A stretch of DNA of 5,241 bases from Octopus sinensis (lineage: Eukaryota), in assembly GCF_006345805.1 (NCBI RefSeq), contig NW_021830143.1:1-5241 (forward strand), given 5' to 3'. Of the stretch, positions 1-5,241 are shown in pieces. How positions within the stretch are numbered: the stretch's first letter is position 1; each line of letters opens with the position of its first letter. Below the pieces are notes generated by a model, which saw nothing but the letters and a program-made list of their open reading frames with translations, was not told the DNA's origin and did no database searches. The position numbers were made by a program, and so were the translations under genes.

Positions 1-95
1 TGGTTGTCCTGAAAACCAATGGCAATCTACCAGAGTACATTTAAAACAAATAAACCAAGACAAGAAACAACCGTAATTAAAAGATTACTTCCGTT

Positions 96-117
96 CTAAT
101 AAACACAACGAGCAAAC
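96..117 (-). other. Putative 22-nt spliceosomal intron near the helicase stop codon
   Basis: Minus strand GTTTGCTCGTTGTGTTTATTAG. Removal gives ...DPNSYERK*, close in length to the usual UAP56 C-terminus. The unspliced reading (SYGLLVVFIRTEVIF*) is also open, so this intron is less certain. Confidence 0.65.
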
Positions 118-562
118 CGTAGCTGTTGGGGTCGATCTTTTCAGGCAACTCATTAATAGTCACTTCGAACCTCTTCTGGACATCATTGAGCACTCCATTG
201 TCCGTACTGTTGGACACAAATCGTCCCGAAACGACCAGCCCTGGCAACTCGATGGAGGAAACTGTCCGCATCGTCAGGCATGTCGTAGTTGAAGACCACA
301 TTCACCCTCTCAATGTCCATTCCCCTCCCAAACAAATCAGTAGCAACGAGTATCCTCTTCTCAAAGTCTTTAAACAGTTGATATCTCTTAAGTCTCTCTT
401 CCTGCTGCATTCCCCGGTGGATGCATATCACTTCAAAATTCCCCGAGAGAAGTAGTTCGGTCAATGCAACCTCGTCTTGACGTTCTCCTCCAACTTGACA
501 TAGTACTGCTGCAGTCCGTGGAGGGTGAGTTTAGACTGGTCGTCGATGTATATCTCCAATGG

Positions 563-586
563 CTACACATTCGAGAACACACTCAC
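563..586 (-). other. 24-nt spliceosomal intron in the helicase gene
   Basis: Minus strand GTGAGTGTGTTCTCGAATGTGTAG, with a canonical GTGAGT donor. It is phase 0 and ends in an in-frame TAG. Removal restores the conserved KFMQD|PLEI junction exactly. Confidence 0.92.
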
Positions 587-715
587 ATCCTGCATAAACT
601 TGAGACAGACAGGGCGAATGGACTTGGGGAGAGTGGCACTGAACATGTGTGCTTATTTCCGTGCATTACTTCCCTGAATACAAAATTTTTCATTTTTTTT
701 AGTCATTTAGTTTTA

Positions 716-720
716 TTGGT
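716..720 (+). repeat. Left 5-bp target-site duplication (TTGGT) of the Ginger-type element
   Basis: TTGGT immediately precedes the terminal TGT at 721 and is identical to 2429-2433. Confidence 0.9.
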
Positions 721-773
721 TGTCACGCGCCATAAATGAAACGCGTGCCTAAAGTGAAACGCCGTGACCTTGA
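721..773 (+). repeat. Left TIR of the Ginger-type element
   Basis: TGTCACGCGCCATAAATGAAACGCGTGCCTAAAGTGAAACGCCGTGACCTTGA matches the reverse complement of 2375-2428 with 5 substitutions and 1 indel. It contains TGAAACGC twice (737-744, 755-762). Confidence 0.93.
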
Positions 774-997
774 ATTTAACCTTCAATTAAGCTCTTGACA
801 ATTATCAAGTCAATATTAAAGATGATTGCGCACTTTGAGATAATATTATCGAAATGAGATTTGCCAACATTGTAAAGGATGATCAGGAGTATAAGAATAT
901 TCTTGATTTTTTAATAAATAATACAATACCAGAAGATTTTTCAAGACTAAAAAGATTTCGTTTTCTCAAAAAATGTAAAAATTCGTAAATTCTGGAG

Positions 998-1019
998 GTA
1001 CTATTAAATCTAATGATAG
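998..1019 (+). other. Putative 22-nt intron in the integrase gene
   Basis: GTACTATTAAATCTAATGATAG, with branch-like CTAAT at 1010-1014. Splicing plus one extra A in the 977-981 run gives KKCKKFVNSGGVLYYK. The call depends on assuming that frameshift. Confidence 0.6.
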
Positions 1020-1290
1020 GTGTGCTATATTATAAACAATCTAATGGAAACAAAATATTGGTAATTGCCTCAAATGATTTCGAATCCATGAAACTGCATT
1101 GTGAAAGGATTCATTCAATTTATCACTATGGATTTAATAAAATGGAAGAGTATTGCAAAAATAATTTTTGCATAATCAATCGAAACATAATTAGGGATGT
1201 AATATCATCATGCCACAAATGTCAGCGAAGTCAGCCCTTAAAGACAAAATATCCACTAGTCAACATAGTAGCCAAAGAACCTCGAGAACG

Positions 1291-1314
1291 GTTCATTCAA
1301 TAGCTTATTTTTAG
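1291..1314 (+). other. 24-nt intron in the integrase gene, just before the first catalytic Asp
   Basis: GTTCATTCAATAGCTTATTTTTAG. It contains the in-frame TAG at 1301 that ends the listed 1013-1303 ORF. Removal gives EPRERYQVDLVD, the expected entry into the rve core. Confidence 0.85.
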
Positions 1315-2374
1315 CTATCAAGTTGATTTAGTCGATCTTTCGTTTTATGCAGATATAAATGATTCCTATAAATATCTTATGAATGTCATAGATATTTATT
1401 CAAAATTTTGCTTTGCTAAAAAAATAGAAAATAAAGAAGCAGTTACAGTTTCGGAATCATTGAAAACTATATTTCTTTCCTATGGTCCACCAAAAATTCT
1501 GCAGTCTGACAACGGAACATAATTTGTTAATTCAGAAATAACGTCATTATGTGAAGAATTTAAAATAATTCATAAAAGGGGACGTCCAAGACATCCAGAA
1601 TCACAGGGACAAGTGGAGCGTTGCAATCAAACCATTTGCAGATGGATTCAAAAAGAACTCACAGACAAACAGAAAAAATGGGTGGATGTGTTAGAAAAAA
1701 TTGTATATCAGTACAATATTTCAATTCATTCTTCTATAAATATGTCACCATTTATGGCTTTTTTCCGAACAAGAGGATATAACATTTCTTAATATAATGA
1801 TGATGAATTAATTGAAGAACATGAAAATCAAACTATCATAAATGACAAATATCTTGAAAGAATGGAACGAAATTTTTCAAAAACATTGAAAGAAATTGCA
1901 ATTGGAAATAATGTTTTGCTGAAAAAAGATTTTGATACAATCAAAGGACGAAGAAGCGAAAATTAGAATCTTTTTATCATCAACAAATCTTTACTGTTGA
2001 AGATTTAATTTCAAATAATAGAGTTAAAATAAAAGATCAAGATGGAAATGAAAAAATAGTATTTAAATCACAAGTTAAAAAAATTTAGACAGGTAAATTT
2101 TCAGGTTAAAATATTTTTAATTTTTTGGTAATTTTAAAATGGCTAACCATTATTTAAATAAATTGTTAATCTTTCAAACGATAATAATAAAAAATTCCAA
2201 GAAAGAAAGAAAAAAAAAGTAAGCAATTGGGTGGCTAAGGGAATTGTCGAGAGCCTGAGGGTCAGCTCAACGATGCCGCGCTGCGTATTGAGTGGCAAAA
2301 AAAATTGATTTCTCGTTTTATTCCTGTTTTCATCAAAGGATTGTTATTTTTTTTCGAGGTTTTTTGTGGTTTTC

Positions 2375-2428
2375 TCAAGGTTCACAGCGTTTCACTTTAG
2401 GCACGCGTTTCATCCATTGCGCGCGACA
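2375..2428 (-). repeat. Right TIR of the Ginger-type element
   Basis: Reverse complement reads TGTCGCGCGCAATGGATGAAACGCGTGCCTAAAGTGAAACGCTGTGAACCTTGA, matching 721-773. Confidence 0.93.
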
Positions 2429-2433
2429 TTGGT
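2429..2433 (+). repeat. Right 5-bp target-site duplication (TTGGT)
   Basis: Directly follows the terminal ACA and is identical to 716-720. Confidence 0.9.
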
Positions 2434-2483
2434 TTTCGTTCAGTTTCCTCTAAATAGTTCATAATTATGTATTTTTATTAATA

Positions 2484-2506
2484 CAGTATAACCTCCATTT
2501 GGGGCA
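2484..2506 (+). repeat. Left TIR of the pogo/Tigger element
   Basis: CAGTATAACCTCCATTTGGGGCA is the exact reverse complement of 4369-4391. Confidence 0.97.
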
Positions 2507-2630
2507 GACCTCTGGCTTGGGGAACCTCTATTTTTGGGGAAACCTCTATTTTTGGGGTAGTTTGAAAAGGATATAATTTTTATGCGGTAATTTCCAAATT
2601 TAGAAATTACCGGAACCTCTAAGTGGGGCA
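2507..2630 (+). repeat. Left subterminal repeats of the TIR core (ACCTCY-N5-7-GGGG), likely transposase-binding sites
   Basis: Copies at 2508-2522 (ACCTCTGGCTTGGGG), 2523-2539 and 2541-2557 (AACCTCTATTTTTGGGG), and 2614-2630 (AACCTCTAAGTGGGGCA). All are in the left-TIR orientation. Confidence 0.85.
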
Positions 2631-2729
2631 CAGGATTTTTAATTTATATACATATTTGCTATTAAAATTAAAATTAATTATATAAAATTTCATTTGGAAG
2701 CCTCGTGTAATTTTTGTATTCTTGTTGTT

Positions 2730-4166
2730 ATGGCTCGTAAGCTTAGTCTTGAGTTAAAGATCAAAATTGCCAAGGAATTAAGTGAAAATAAACATCTTAC
2801 TGAACGAGATATTGTAGATAAGTACAAAATTAGTAAAGGTTTTTTATTAATGTAAGTTTTTAGGCGCTGTGTCACGTATTAAAAAAAATTATCTCAATTT
2901 TTTTAATACTGGGGCTGTTCAAACAGATTTTCCCAGAAATATTCAACGCTCTCCTCATACTTTATCCCAAAAATTGGATAAAATTGTTTTTGAGGCTTTC
3001 ACCAAGACAAGGGAAGAATTTATTCCTGTGTCCGGTCCTCTTTTAAAAAATATTGCTTCCAAAGTAGCAAGGATGTTGAATTATTCGGCGTTCAAAGGGT
3101 CCAATGGCTGGTTGGAAAAATTTAAGAAAAGACATATGTTGTCATTTAAGACAATTAGTGGAGAGAAAAACTCTTCCGATGTTTCTTCGCTTGATATGTT
3201 TTTTTCCAAGTATGATGAATACGTAAAAGAATATGGTCTTCAAAATATTTTTAATTGCGACGAAACTGGGTTATATATTAAAAGGATACCTTCAAAATCA
3301 TTTGTAAGTTCGGATGAAGATTGTTTCGGAATTAAAAGGAGTAAAGAAAAATTCACTATTCTTTTGTCGGTCAGTGCTTGTGGCGAAAAATTGAAGCCAT
3401 TGTTAGTAGGAAAATATAAATCCCCACGTTGTATGAAAAACTTTAACCCTGAAGAACATGGAGTTTCATATTCATCATCTAAAAACAGTTGGATGACATC
3501 AGAAATATTTATTACATGGCTCACCATTACAAATGAACAAATGATTACGCAAAAGAGAAAAATTGTTTTGTTACTTGATAACGCAAGCTGTCACAAATAT
3601 ATCCATCTTTCCAACATTGAATTGTTTTTTCTCCCAAAAAATACAACCTCATTAATTCAACCGTTAGACATGGGTATTATTAAATCTTTCAAGTCCAATT
3701 ATCTTAACGCTTTATTGGATTTTACTCTTTATTTTGAGGACGTTGAGTTACAAATGGTTAATTTAAAAAATAAATCTTTGTCATGTCGTAAAATTGTTGA
3801 ACAAACGTGGCAAAATTTAAATCCTTAAACAATAACGAATTGTTGGGAAACAATTAATAACTCTCGGCAACAGATTCCTAGTTCAATTTTTTAGTTGACA
3901 GTGACGAAGAAAATTTGGACACGATAATTGCAGACGTAATTGCTGAAAATGAAGAACATGATGATGAGTCAATATATGATCAAACTGAATGGAACTGTTC
4001 ACACTTGGACACGATAACAGCAATGAATAACCTTGAAGAGAATATTCACCGTTTGTTTCCAGATGCGTTAAAAGACTATTACAATTTCATAAAAATATTG
4101 GGCATAAATATGAAGAAATCTGCAACAGGAAACAAAATAACAGATTATTTTTGTGTAATAGAATAA
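2730..4166 (+). pseudogene. pogo/Tigger transposase (~470 aa reconstructed), with one intron, one nonsense codon and one frameshift
   Basis: Exon 1 (2730-2838, MARKLSLELKIKIAKELSENKHLTERDIVDKYKISK) joins exon 2 (2864 onward, GAVSRIKK) to form a CENP-B/psq-type HTH. Second HTH: IPVSGPLLK...FKGSNGWLEKFKKRH. Catalytic Asp residues in NCDETG (3259), LLLDNASCH (3577) and IQPLDMGII (3667), giving DD29D. TAA at 3826-3828 interrupts NLNP*TITNCW. A frameshift at 3887-3892 leads into an acidic tail ending KITDYFCVIE* (4166); AATAAA overlaps the stop. Confidence 0.93.
2839..2863 (+). other. 25-nt intron in the transposase HTH region
   Basis: GTTTTTTATTAATGTAAGTTTTTAG. If retained, the frame hits TAA at 2853. 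Removal joins two frames into ISKGAVSRIKK and supplies the ATG that the listed 2869 ORF lacks. Confidence 0.9.
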
Positions 4167-4316
4167 AAATTTTTTTCTACTTGAAAAATACTCTAATTAT
4201 CAATAAAATTAGTGGAAAACATGTTTAAATGTTCTTAAAAATACTTTATTTATTTATAAATTAATGAAAAATATGCTAAAACTATTAAAATTTTTATAAA
4301 AATAAAGAAAATTTCA

Positions 4317-4353
4317 GACCTCCATTTTTGGGGAAACCTCTATTTTTGGGGCA
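4317..4353 (+). repeat. Right subterminal repeats, in the same orientation as the left-end copies
   Basis: GACCTCCATTTTTGGGG (4317-4333) and AACCTCTATTTTTGGGG (4335-4351). Bases 4324-4351 are identical to 2530-2557. Confidence 0.88.
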
Positions 4354-4368
4354 ATTTTTCAAAATTGA

Positions 4369-4391
4369 TGCCCCAAATGGAGGTTATACTG
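4369..4391 (-). repeat. Right TIR of the pogo/Tigger element
   Basis: TGCCCCAAATGGAGGTTATACTG, followed by TA. Confidence 0.97.
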
Positions 4392-4587
4392 TAGCTAAAA
4401 CCACTATACATTACTCATCACACCAACAAAGTCGTATTTATAATATTTAATAATTTAATAAAATACAAGCGAAATTTTAAAATTAATCAAAAACCAATTA
4501 AATCTTTGAATATTAAGGATGATGATTTTTGGGGTAACTATTGGTGAGTCTCTAATGTCATTACATGTAGTTTTTCACCCCCAGCAG

Positions 4588-5153
4588 TTACTCCAGAAAC
4601 TCGAGGGCAGTCCTGATTTGAGAAGGGCGGAATATTTTTTTGTCCGTTTTGGCCACGAGACTTTCGATGAGTTCTGAAAAGTCAAGATGAACAAGTTTGT
4701 GTGTCAGCAGAATGGACAATCTGGAGACGCAGGTGGTCTGCATTGTCGTACTTTTCAACTCGAGTCCGTGCTTCACCAGCAATCTGAGCAGATTCTGTCC
4801 CCCTGTCGACACTTCCTGAACATTAGGTGGAGCACTCGCATGGCTTTGAGAGCATTTGAGAGTTTACTGTCGCAAATGCGGTTGATCACGTGGGGCATCA
4901 TTCTGGTGATGAACGAGTCTCTTTGTTGACCCAGCTGGGTTATGCACGTTTTGGTCAACGACAGGAATTTCTGTCGATTCGTCCAATTCGGGTCGACTGA
5001 CAATTTCCGCAGGGATTTGCACACAAAGTCAAGGTTATCCTCCACCGAGTCATTGAGGAGGGATGTGATTTCTTCCTCAATGTCTTCTGAGTGTCTTTCC
5101 GAATAGATTGTCTGTTCACAATTGTTGTTATCCACAAATGAACAACAATTATT
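4588..5153 (-). pseudogene. TOGARAM1: HEAT/TOG-domain gene fragment resembling the first TOG domain of TOGARAM/FAM179/Crescerin; frameshifted, with both ends unresolved
   Basis: Listed ORFs 4773-5135 and 4588-4812 join if one base is added to the C5 run at 4799-4803: ...DPNWTNRQKFL...HVINRICDSKLSNALKAMRVLHLMFRKCRQGGQNLLRLLVKHGLELKSTTMQTTCVSRLSILLTHKLVHLDFSELIESLVAK...RTALEFLE*. This parallels my recollection of human TOGARAM1 TOG1 (ALQILHICLKR...VLRTLIQQGLE...LPILLT...LDLTEVIISLARKL). The assignment is family-level and from memory. An in-frame TGA lies upstream at 5156-5154 and no ATG was found. Confidence 0.6.
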
Positions 5154-5241
5154 TCAACGACAATTATGATTCCTACTTCCGAAGTGGCAATCATCTGAAC
5201 TACTCCTCACCCCCCTGCCCCACGAAATGGGTCAAGACTAT

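Follow-up and report, generated by a model that had tools for sequence, protein, structure and literature searches.

Organization of the contig

The window analyzed in this study (the whole stretch of DNA, 5,241 nt in length) carries two transposase genes interrupted by very short GT-AG segments. It is the entire contig VCDQ01006390.1 of assembly GCA_006345805.1, which is filed as Octopus sinensis. Two unrelated DNA transposons, as the initial annotation had proposed, were found side by side, one with a Ginger2-type rve integrase and the other with the DDE_1 and HTH_Tnp_Tc5 domains of a pogo/Tigger transposase. Each of the two genes contains at least one host-sized segment of 24-25 nt, which agrees with the proposal that both families have been fitted to a micro-intron spliceosome, whereas the additional segment at 998-1019 does not. 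The two elements comprise the following features.

716-720, no strand assigned: left target-site duplication TTGGT, with the right copy at 2429-2433, read from the sequence beside the ends of the terminal inverted repeats (TIRs)
721-2428, plus strand: Ginger2-type cut-and-paste element, 1708 bp, with TIRs at 721-767 and 2382-2428 (47 nt, 89% complementary)
854-2088, plus strand: integrase-type transposase gene, defective, delimited by alignment with P0241-P0255 and repair scans; stop codon TAG at 2086-2088
998-1019, plus strand: doubtful 22-nt GT-AG segment; homologues lack these 7 codons, and excision shifts the frame
1291-1314, plus strand: probable 24-nt GT-AG intron, phase 2, with a length divisible by three and an in-frame TAG inside
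2484-4391, plus strand: pogo/Tigger-type element, 1908 bp, with TA flanks at 2482-2483 and 4392-4393 and perfect TIRs starting with CAGT
2730-4166, plus strand: pogo transposase gene, defective, delimited by homologues and by the C-terminus of the second related copy on contig L002; stop codon at 4164-4166
2839-2863, plus strand: GT-AG intron of 25 nt in phase 1 (GTTTTT...TTTAG), which splits a Gly codon of the first helix-turn-helix domain

All five GT-AG segments listed by the initial annotation (22, 24, 22, 24, and 25 nt, at 96-117, 563-586, 998-1019, 1291-1314, and 2839-2863) were present with these coordinates and lengths, the two in the host gene being read on the minus strand. Pairs of GT and AG spaced 20-30 nt apart are common in the window (140 on the plus strand and 117 on the minus strand, with 68 and 51, respectively, inside 96-2863); therefore, the presence of such a pair means nothing by itself, and homology must decide. 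Each GT-AG removal of 12-60 nt near each site was scored against profiles of homologues, from which the window was excluded. The segments at 563, 1291, and 2839 each proved to be the top-scoring removal in their neighbourhood, in agreement with the claim that they restore conserved motifs. As for five micro-introns in total, 2839-2863 is firm, 1291-1314 is probable, and 563-586 is the best candidate at its site, whereas 998-1019 breaks the frame and 96-117 is only plausible. Beyond the GT, the candidate introns of the transposons have a weak 5' splice site, and they are AT-rich (75-84% AT), as host introns are.

The pogo/Tigger element and its 25-nt intron

The repeat arms of the pogo element, identified by a repeat search, are 25 nt long including the flanking TA (2482-2506 and 4369-4393) and have the form TA/CAGT...ACTG/TA. 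Subterminal repeats of 18 nt were also detected at 2517-2557 and 4318-4357 (repeat search and TRF). The encoded protein matched DDE_1 (E=5e-36) and HTH_Tnp_Tc5 (E=2.5e-11), and these domains, the TIRs, and the flanking TA are all those of the pogo/Tigger group.

Excision of 2839-2863 yields KYKISKG/AVSRIKK (the slash marks the junction), which is comparable to KGTISRIRK and KGSVFRIKK in the intact relatives P0002 and P0005. Among the 22 GT-AG candidates, this removal ranked first with 453 bits, against 441 bits for the runner-up and 15.8 bits for the unspliced gene, and weak helix-turn-helix matches cross the junction only in the micro-spliced form. Retention of the segment gives KGFLLM followed by a stop codon, so that the protein ends five extra codons on. 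Additionally, a sister pogo family sharing 56% amino acid identity has a GT-AG intron in the same Gly codon and the same phase in three copies, found on the 500-kb contig VCDQ01002911.1 of the same assembly (L002; introns of 29 and 30 nt) and on L005 (30 nt). The sequence of these introns has diverged from that in the window. Since the flanking exons have remained protein-like during this divergence, the elements must have been functional with the segment in place, and splicing would therefore have been required. Based on these sequence comparisons, the identification of 2839-2863 as a spliceosomal micro-intron is strongly supported.

The two sister-family copies on L002 (9700-13430) are nested: the second interrupts the C-terminal coding region of the first, and a piece of the C-terminus lies inverted at 11500-11565.

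The pogo protein query also matched the RefSeq protein carried by the window (P0001, 336 aa), which is named tigger transposable element-derived protein 6-like of Octopus sinensis. This model joins 2730-2838 to 2927-3828; it uses the micro-intron donor at 2839 and an acceptor at 2926, which is 63 nt too far downstream. The resulting 88-nt intron, instead of one of 25 nt, deletes 21 residues of the DNA-binding domain. This misplaced acceptor bears out the suggestion that micro-introns escape annotation.

The Ginger2-type element and its two segments

The termini of the Ginger-type element (TGTCA...ACA) and its target-site duplication (TSD) conform to the TGTNR ends and 4-5 bp TSDs of Ginger2. 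The gene product matched rve (E=6.4e-16) and, weakly and under the Pfam cut-off, Integrase_H2C2 (E=1e-4), and the H, H, C, and C of the H2C2 finger are invariant in the alignment with the homologues P0241-P0255. KRBA2-like proteins were among the homologues of this transposase. A Gypsy-like integrase was thus found without reverse transcriptase or RNase H, in an element of only 1.7 kb, and by these sequence features 721-2428 fits Ginger2 as defined previously (PMC2836005).

With 1291-1314 excised, the protein reads EPRERYQVDLVDL. This stretch includes the first catalytic Asp, and its alignment with ERFQIDLIDM and related sequences is gapless. This removal ranked first among 32 GT-AG candidates (188 bits, against 175 bits for the unspliced gene), and retention gives ERFIQ followed immediately by a stop codon. 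In Paramecium, stopless introns with a length divisible by three are in deficit, which has been attributed to nonsense-mediated decay of unspliced mRNA (Jaillon 2008, as cited in PMC3464196). The segment at 1291-1314, divisible by three and containing a stop codon, follows this pattern. Judged from its sequence context, it is a probable spliceosomal intron.

The status of the segment at 998-1019 is different. Its removal as written scored 14.8 bits, with the downstream zinc finger and DDE region thrown out of frame, against 105.6 bits for read-through. Removal of 21 nt, or of 22 nt with a 1-nt repair at the junction, scored 115-117 bits. One more base at the edge of the exon (the G-run at the donor, for instance) would put the segment in frame, and no alternative canonical in-frame donor or acceptor was found for it.

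The search for further copies of the Ginger element gave only a 5'-truncated fragment on L002 (3240-3886) and, on a 1.3-Mb contig of O. sinensis (L003), a distant copy that has no intron.

Decay of the two copies

Both transposon copies in the window are dead, with in-frame TAA stop codons and 1-nt frameshifts. In the Ginger gene, TAA occurs at 983-985 (where it is in frame only if exon 1 is read through), at 1520-1522, where it replaces the conserved Glu of DNGxEF in the homologues, and at 1790-1792. The gene also has a frame disturbance at 997/1019 and a 1-nt deletion near 1938; a single-base repair near the latter adds 46 bits. The pogo gene has TAA at 3826-3828, where homologues carry a conserved Glu (xETIxNC), and one base is deleted from a T-run near 3884-3895; a single-base repair near 3884 adds 34 bits. 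The two TAA codons at conserved Glu positions (1520-1522 and 3826-3828) fit GAA-to-TAA transversions.

The C-terminal frame changes near 1938 and 3884 were also considered as further introns, and no GT-AG removal there improved the score. Consequently, the fragmented open reading frame (ORF) track, which the initial annotation had put down to introns, is explained by them in part; the in-frame TAA codons and the 1-nt deletions near 1938 and 3884 contribute as well.

Host genes flanking the transposons

The two elements are flanked by two host genes on the minus strand, with the following features.

85-652, minus strand: UAP56/DDX39-type DEAD-box helicase relic, C-terminal half only (Pfam Helicase_C, E=2.5e-22); stop codon TAA at 85-87
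96-117, minus strand: candidate 22-nt GT-AG intron preceding the last 3 helicase codons; the spliced end reads ...PNSYERK and stop, an orthologue-like length
563-586, minus strand: 24-nt GT-AG intron, phase 0, in the helicase relic; excision gives KFMQD/PLEIYIDD, compared with KFMQDPMEVYVDD in orthologues
4588-5241, minus strand: second host gene, running off the window, encoding a helical-repeat protein of uncertain identity; stop codon TAA at 4588-4590
4816-4835, minus strand: likely 20-nt GT-AG intron; excision fuses two ORFs to a single frame of 176 residues or more

The helicase relic has no upstream exons and no N-terminal half. Compared with orthologues, about 73 nt (24 codons, KLF...QRC) are gone near 470, and near 222 about 17 nt (KGLGVT) have been lost; in the alignment with P0121 and P0134, 24 and 6 residues are absent, with frame changes. 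The fragment is a duplicate that has decayed or else an artefact of the assembly. The sequence described as a host gene is therefore host helicase sequence, but in the form of a 5'-truncated UAP56 relic with internal deletions. Its segment at 563-586 ranked first among 43 GT-AG candidates (85 bits spliced, against 71 bits unspliced). For 96-117, the profile gave 36.5 bits spliced, 34.9 bits unspliced, and 37.5 bits for the alternative 88-117; an intron here is plausible from its position, and the scoring does not separate it from read-through or from 88-117.

The sole Pfam hint for the second host gene was a weak match to TPR_DNAAF5. Its segment at 4816-4835 would be among the shortest introns in this analysis. 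The transposon coding region (854-4166) has an AT content of 69-72%, and the host exons (118-562 and 4836-5241) have 52-55%.

Origin of the contig

The first impression was that of a ciliate, and a ciliate or another protist that reads TAA and TAG as amino acids would leave the transposon genes intact. All in-frame stop codons in the transposons are indeed TAA, two of them at a conserved Glu of the homologues, and micro-introns are typical of several ciliate groups (PMC13644364). However, host genes terminate with TAA or TAG, and both the helicase relic and the second host gene end at TAA at orthologue-length or ORF-end positions. The TOP1 gene on the neighbouring contig L002 contains nine GT-AG segments of 25-29 nt, and their excision gives a single open ORF of about 600 aa in the standard code; this ORF has no in-frame TAA or TAG in its roughly 600 codons and terminates at TAG. 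Moreover, the 1-nt frameshifts persist under any genetic code, and every named match to the helicase fragment is from an animal (the best of 1739 database matches is 63% identical). The stop codons of the host genes and the stop-free TOP1 led us to reject the first impression, and we regard such a host as highly improbable.

The micro-introns of TOP1 and of the helicase relic indicate that the source of these contigs is a compact genome that uses the standard genetic code and has micro-introns. Animal genes, introns mostly shorter than 30 nt, and the standard code are together the features by which a dicyemid genome would be recognized, and all three were found. Among animals, introns of less than 30 bp are reported only in dicyemids and myxozoans (PMC13644364), the median dicyemid intron is 27 bp (PMC6543705), and Dicyema japonicum has been isolated from the kidneys of O. 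sinensis (PMC6736024). A dicyemid origin is therefore the best inference from the compact micro-intron contigs and the literature: the window is probably genomic DNA of a micro-intron animal, most likely a dicyemid mesozoan (e.g., Dicyema) of the octopus kidney. Most likely, a sequence unlike octopus has thus been assembled and annotated as O. sinensis.

If the contig were authentic octopus DNA (such as parasite DNA that had been transferred to the octopus) and not a contaminant, its presence in the deposited O. sinensis assembly, with its RefSeq gene model, would be accounted for. Nevertheless, the related contigs of 116-500 kb hold compact housekeeping genes with introns of 25-29 nt, which are absent from octopus genes, and a helicase 63% identical to animal UAP56 is too divergent for a mollusc orthologue. 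An octopus origin is therefore very unlikely.

The window, L002, and L005 (VCDQ01013367.1, 116 kb) contain compact genes with introns of 20-29 nt, and their RefSeq proteins are labelled Octopus sinensis. All three contigs seem to derive from a parasite of the kidney, which is probably a dicyemid. Intron length differs by contig, for host and transposon genes alike (20-25 nt in the window and 25-30 nt on L002 and L005); two dicyemid species may be mixed in the assembly. Exact-protein look-ups of ORFs of the window (pogo, 319 aa; host, 120 and 93 aa) found no record, and Rfam, tRNA, and tandem-repeat scans of the window yielded nothing relevant except the subterminal repeats of the pogo element.

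Probable intron gain in the micro-intron lineage

The pogo relative from Dictyocoela muelleri (L007) is encoded by a continuous genomic ORF of 1407 nt for 468 aa without an intron, and the Ginger relative from Nosema granulosis (L008) by a continuous genomic ORF of 1275 nt for 424 aa. Two Logan contigs (L004 and L006), one with a pogo relative and one with a Ginger relative, likewise have continuous ORFs across the intron sites, as does the Ginger copy on L003. Because the closest genomic relatives are uninterrupted at these sites, the evidence favours gain over shrinkage, the two routes that the initial annotation had left side by side; shrinkage is not favoured. The comparison of intron positions that it called for thus showed a pogo site shared with the sister family and empty in the microsporidian and Logan relatives. 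This comparison favours acquisition of the introns within the micro-intron lineage, at a time when the two pogo families had not yet separated.

The closest named relatives of both transposons are from microsporidia of amphipods, with 33-47% identity. The microsporidian hits were P0005, P0006, P0008, and P0033 for pogo and P0243, P0250, P0256, and P0257 for Ginger, and the names among them included Dictyocoela muelleri, Cucumispora dikerogammari, and Nosema granulosis. The GC content is low (28-32%) in L007, L008, and both Logan contigs, and the microsporidian affinity could reflect either old horizontal transfer among parasites or compositional attraction. A search of the short flanking sequences of the Logan and microsporidian relatives revealed no TIRs.

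Interpretation and implications

Taken together, we consider it likely that the window is a dicyemid contig with dead Ginger2 and pogo elements, whose genes are split by host-sized spliceosomal introns gained in that lineage. The anatomy of the elements, the restoration of homology on excision, the conserved position of the pogo intron, and the absence of the introns in relatives are shown directly; splicing itself, the dicyemid identity, and gain instead of loss are inferred. The two unrelated elements would have inserted into an AT-rich spacer between the UAP56 relic and the second host gene, and their transposase genes would be split by spliceosomal introns of the host size class, acquired after the families entered the micro-intron lineage. 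From an active copy, a host spliceosome that handles GT-AG introns of 20-30 nt would remove these introns from the pre-mRNA, and splicing would complete the first helix-turn-helix of the pogo protein and the segment with the first catalytic Asp of the Ginger protein.

Several observations weigh against this reading. No near-identical transcript-derived proteins were found in a collection of 5.8 billion proteins. As a working intron, 998-1019 fails, since this copy has no open frame after removal of the 22 nt. Since a single copy of the Ginger family was compared, its 24-nt segment could be an insertion peculiar to that dead copy. Errors of long-read assembly, and not decay, could account for some of the 1-nt lesions. 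The dicyemid identity is proposed from gene and intron features together with the literature, and the collections searched yielded no dicyemid sequences. Finally, the host introns of the window, at 20-24 nt, are slightly shorter than those on the neighbouring contig, at 25-29 nt, which may mean that the two contigs stem from different species.

Some of these points would suit a rival explanation, in which the short segments are small insertions or duplications in dead copies and have GT...AG ends by chance; GT and AG pairs at this spacing are frequent, both copies carry other lesions, the Ginger family is seen here from a single copy, and excision of 998-1019 does not restore the frame. However, a sister family with 56% amino acid identity shares the codon phase of the pogo segment, and there the flanks have stayed protein-like while the intron has diverged in sequence and in length, to 29-30 nt. 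Furthermore, 2839-2863 and 1291-1314 are each the single best GT-AG removal nearby, and the segment sizes match those of host introns. Chance insertions are thus an unlikely, but not negligible, explanation compared with spliceosomal introns.

With spliceosomal introns as the preferred reading, transposon micro-introns at sites empty in relatives look like a dated case of intron gain and maintenance under a miniaturised spliceosome. A more general proposal, which we put forward only tentatively, is that dicyemid transposon families gained spliceosomal introns, kept them across family divergence, and have intron lengths that track the local host optimum (20-25 nt here and 25-30 nt on the neighbouring contigs, which are maybe from another species). 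If this is true, transposon genes would offer a natural read-out of the constraints that a miniaturised spliceosome places on introns, and perhaps of its part in creating them, and dependence on micro-intron splicing could limit the horizontal spread of the elements. Restriction of the elements to micro-intron hosts, as the initial annotation suggested, is speculation.

In the Octopus sinensis reference assembly, at least three contigs of up to 500 kb, the window among them, seem to be parasite DNA. Their RefSeq models are wrong, as the pipeline is unable to place introns of 25 nt. Annotation based on ORFs or on standard gene models would also under-call dicyemid transposases, and repeats make up about half of dicyemid DNA. 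The recognition of parasite contigs annotated as octopus genes is a by-product that may be as useful as the observation on introns.

Comparison with known systems

The Ginger2/Tdd elements (Bao et al. 2010, PMC2836005) are the source of KRBA2 and SCAND3 (PMC3575427). The Ginger-type element resembles them in its rve DDE integrase with an H2C2 finger, TGTNR termini, a short TSD, and the absence of reverse transcriptase. It differs in length (1.7 kb, compared with 2.7-6.7 kb for the listed families) and in its target (TTGGT, compared with the preferred RTATAY). Ginger1 genes carry 1-4 introns, the sizes of which are not stated (PMC2836005), whereas the probable intron here is 24 nt long.

The other element resembles pogo/Tigger members of the Tc1/mariner group in its DDE_1 and HTH_Tnp_Tc5 domains, TA duplication, and short, perfect TIRs with CAGT ends. 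Spliceosomal introns are ordinary in transposons: splicing is needed by P, Ac, and Drosophila pogo, and in Drosophila pogo one short intron (about 55 nt) is spliced to join two ORFs. The element described here has a 25-nt intron, which lies inside the first helix-turn-helix, and the closest genomic relatives, from microsporidia, have none at this site.

The introns of the transposons fall inside the class described for dicyemid host genes, which have GT-AG introns of 20-30 nt with weak motifs (Ogino 2010; Lu 2019, PMC6736024; Zverkov 2019, PMC6543705). Those descriptions cover host genes, whereas the present introns are in transposon genes. In the main texts of two dicyemid genome papers (PMC6736024 and PMC6543705), words for transposons are absent and transposon introns go unmentioned; LINE-1 retrotransposable elements are all that PMC6736024 names.

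A parallel in a micro-intron host is Paramecium, with introns of about 25 nt, where the transposase ORFs of Sardine and Thon were rebuilt after removal of predicted introns and a potential intron was noted in the DDE transposase of Anchois (Arnaiz et al. 2012, PMC3464196). The Paramecium elements differ in that the host is a ciliate, the elements are germline-limited, and the introns are only predicted, in a supplementary legend. Conservation of intron position between families was not reported for them (PMC3464196), unlike for pogo here. The initial annotation was not aware of a description of such introns in transposons; the idea has been described before, given Ginger1 (PMC2836005) and the Paramecium elements (PMC3464196). 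The present finding is not unprecedented; it adds one more case, from a host lineage that is new, and the conserved intron position makes a useful argument.

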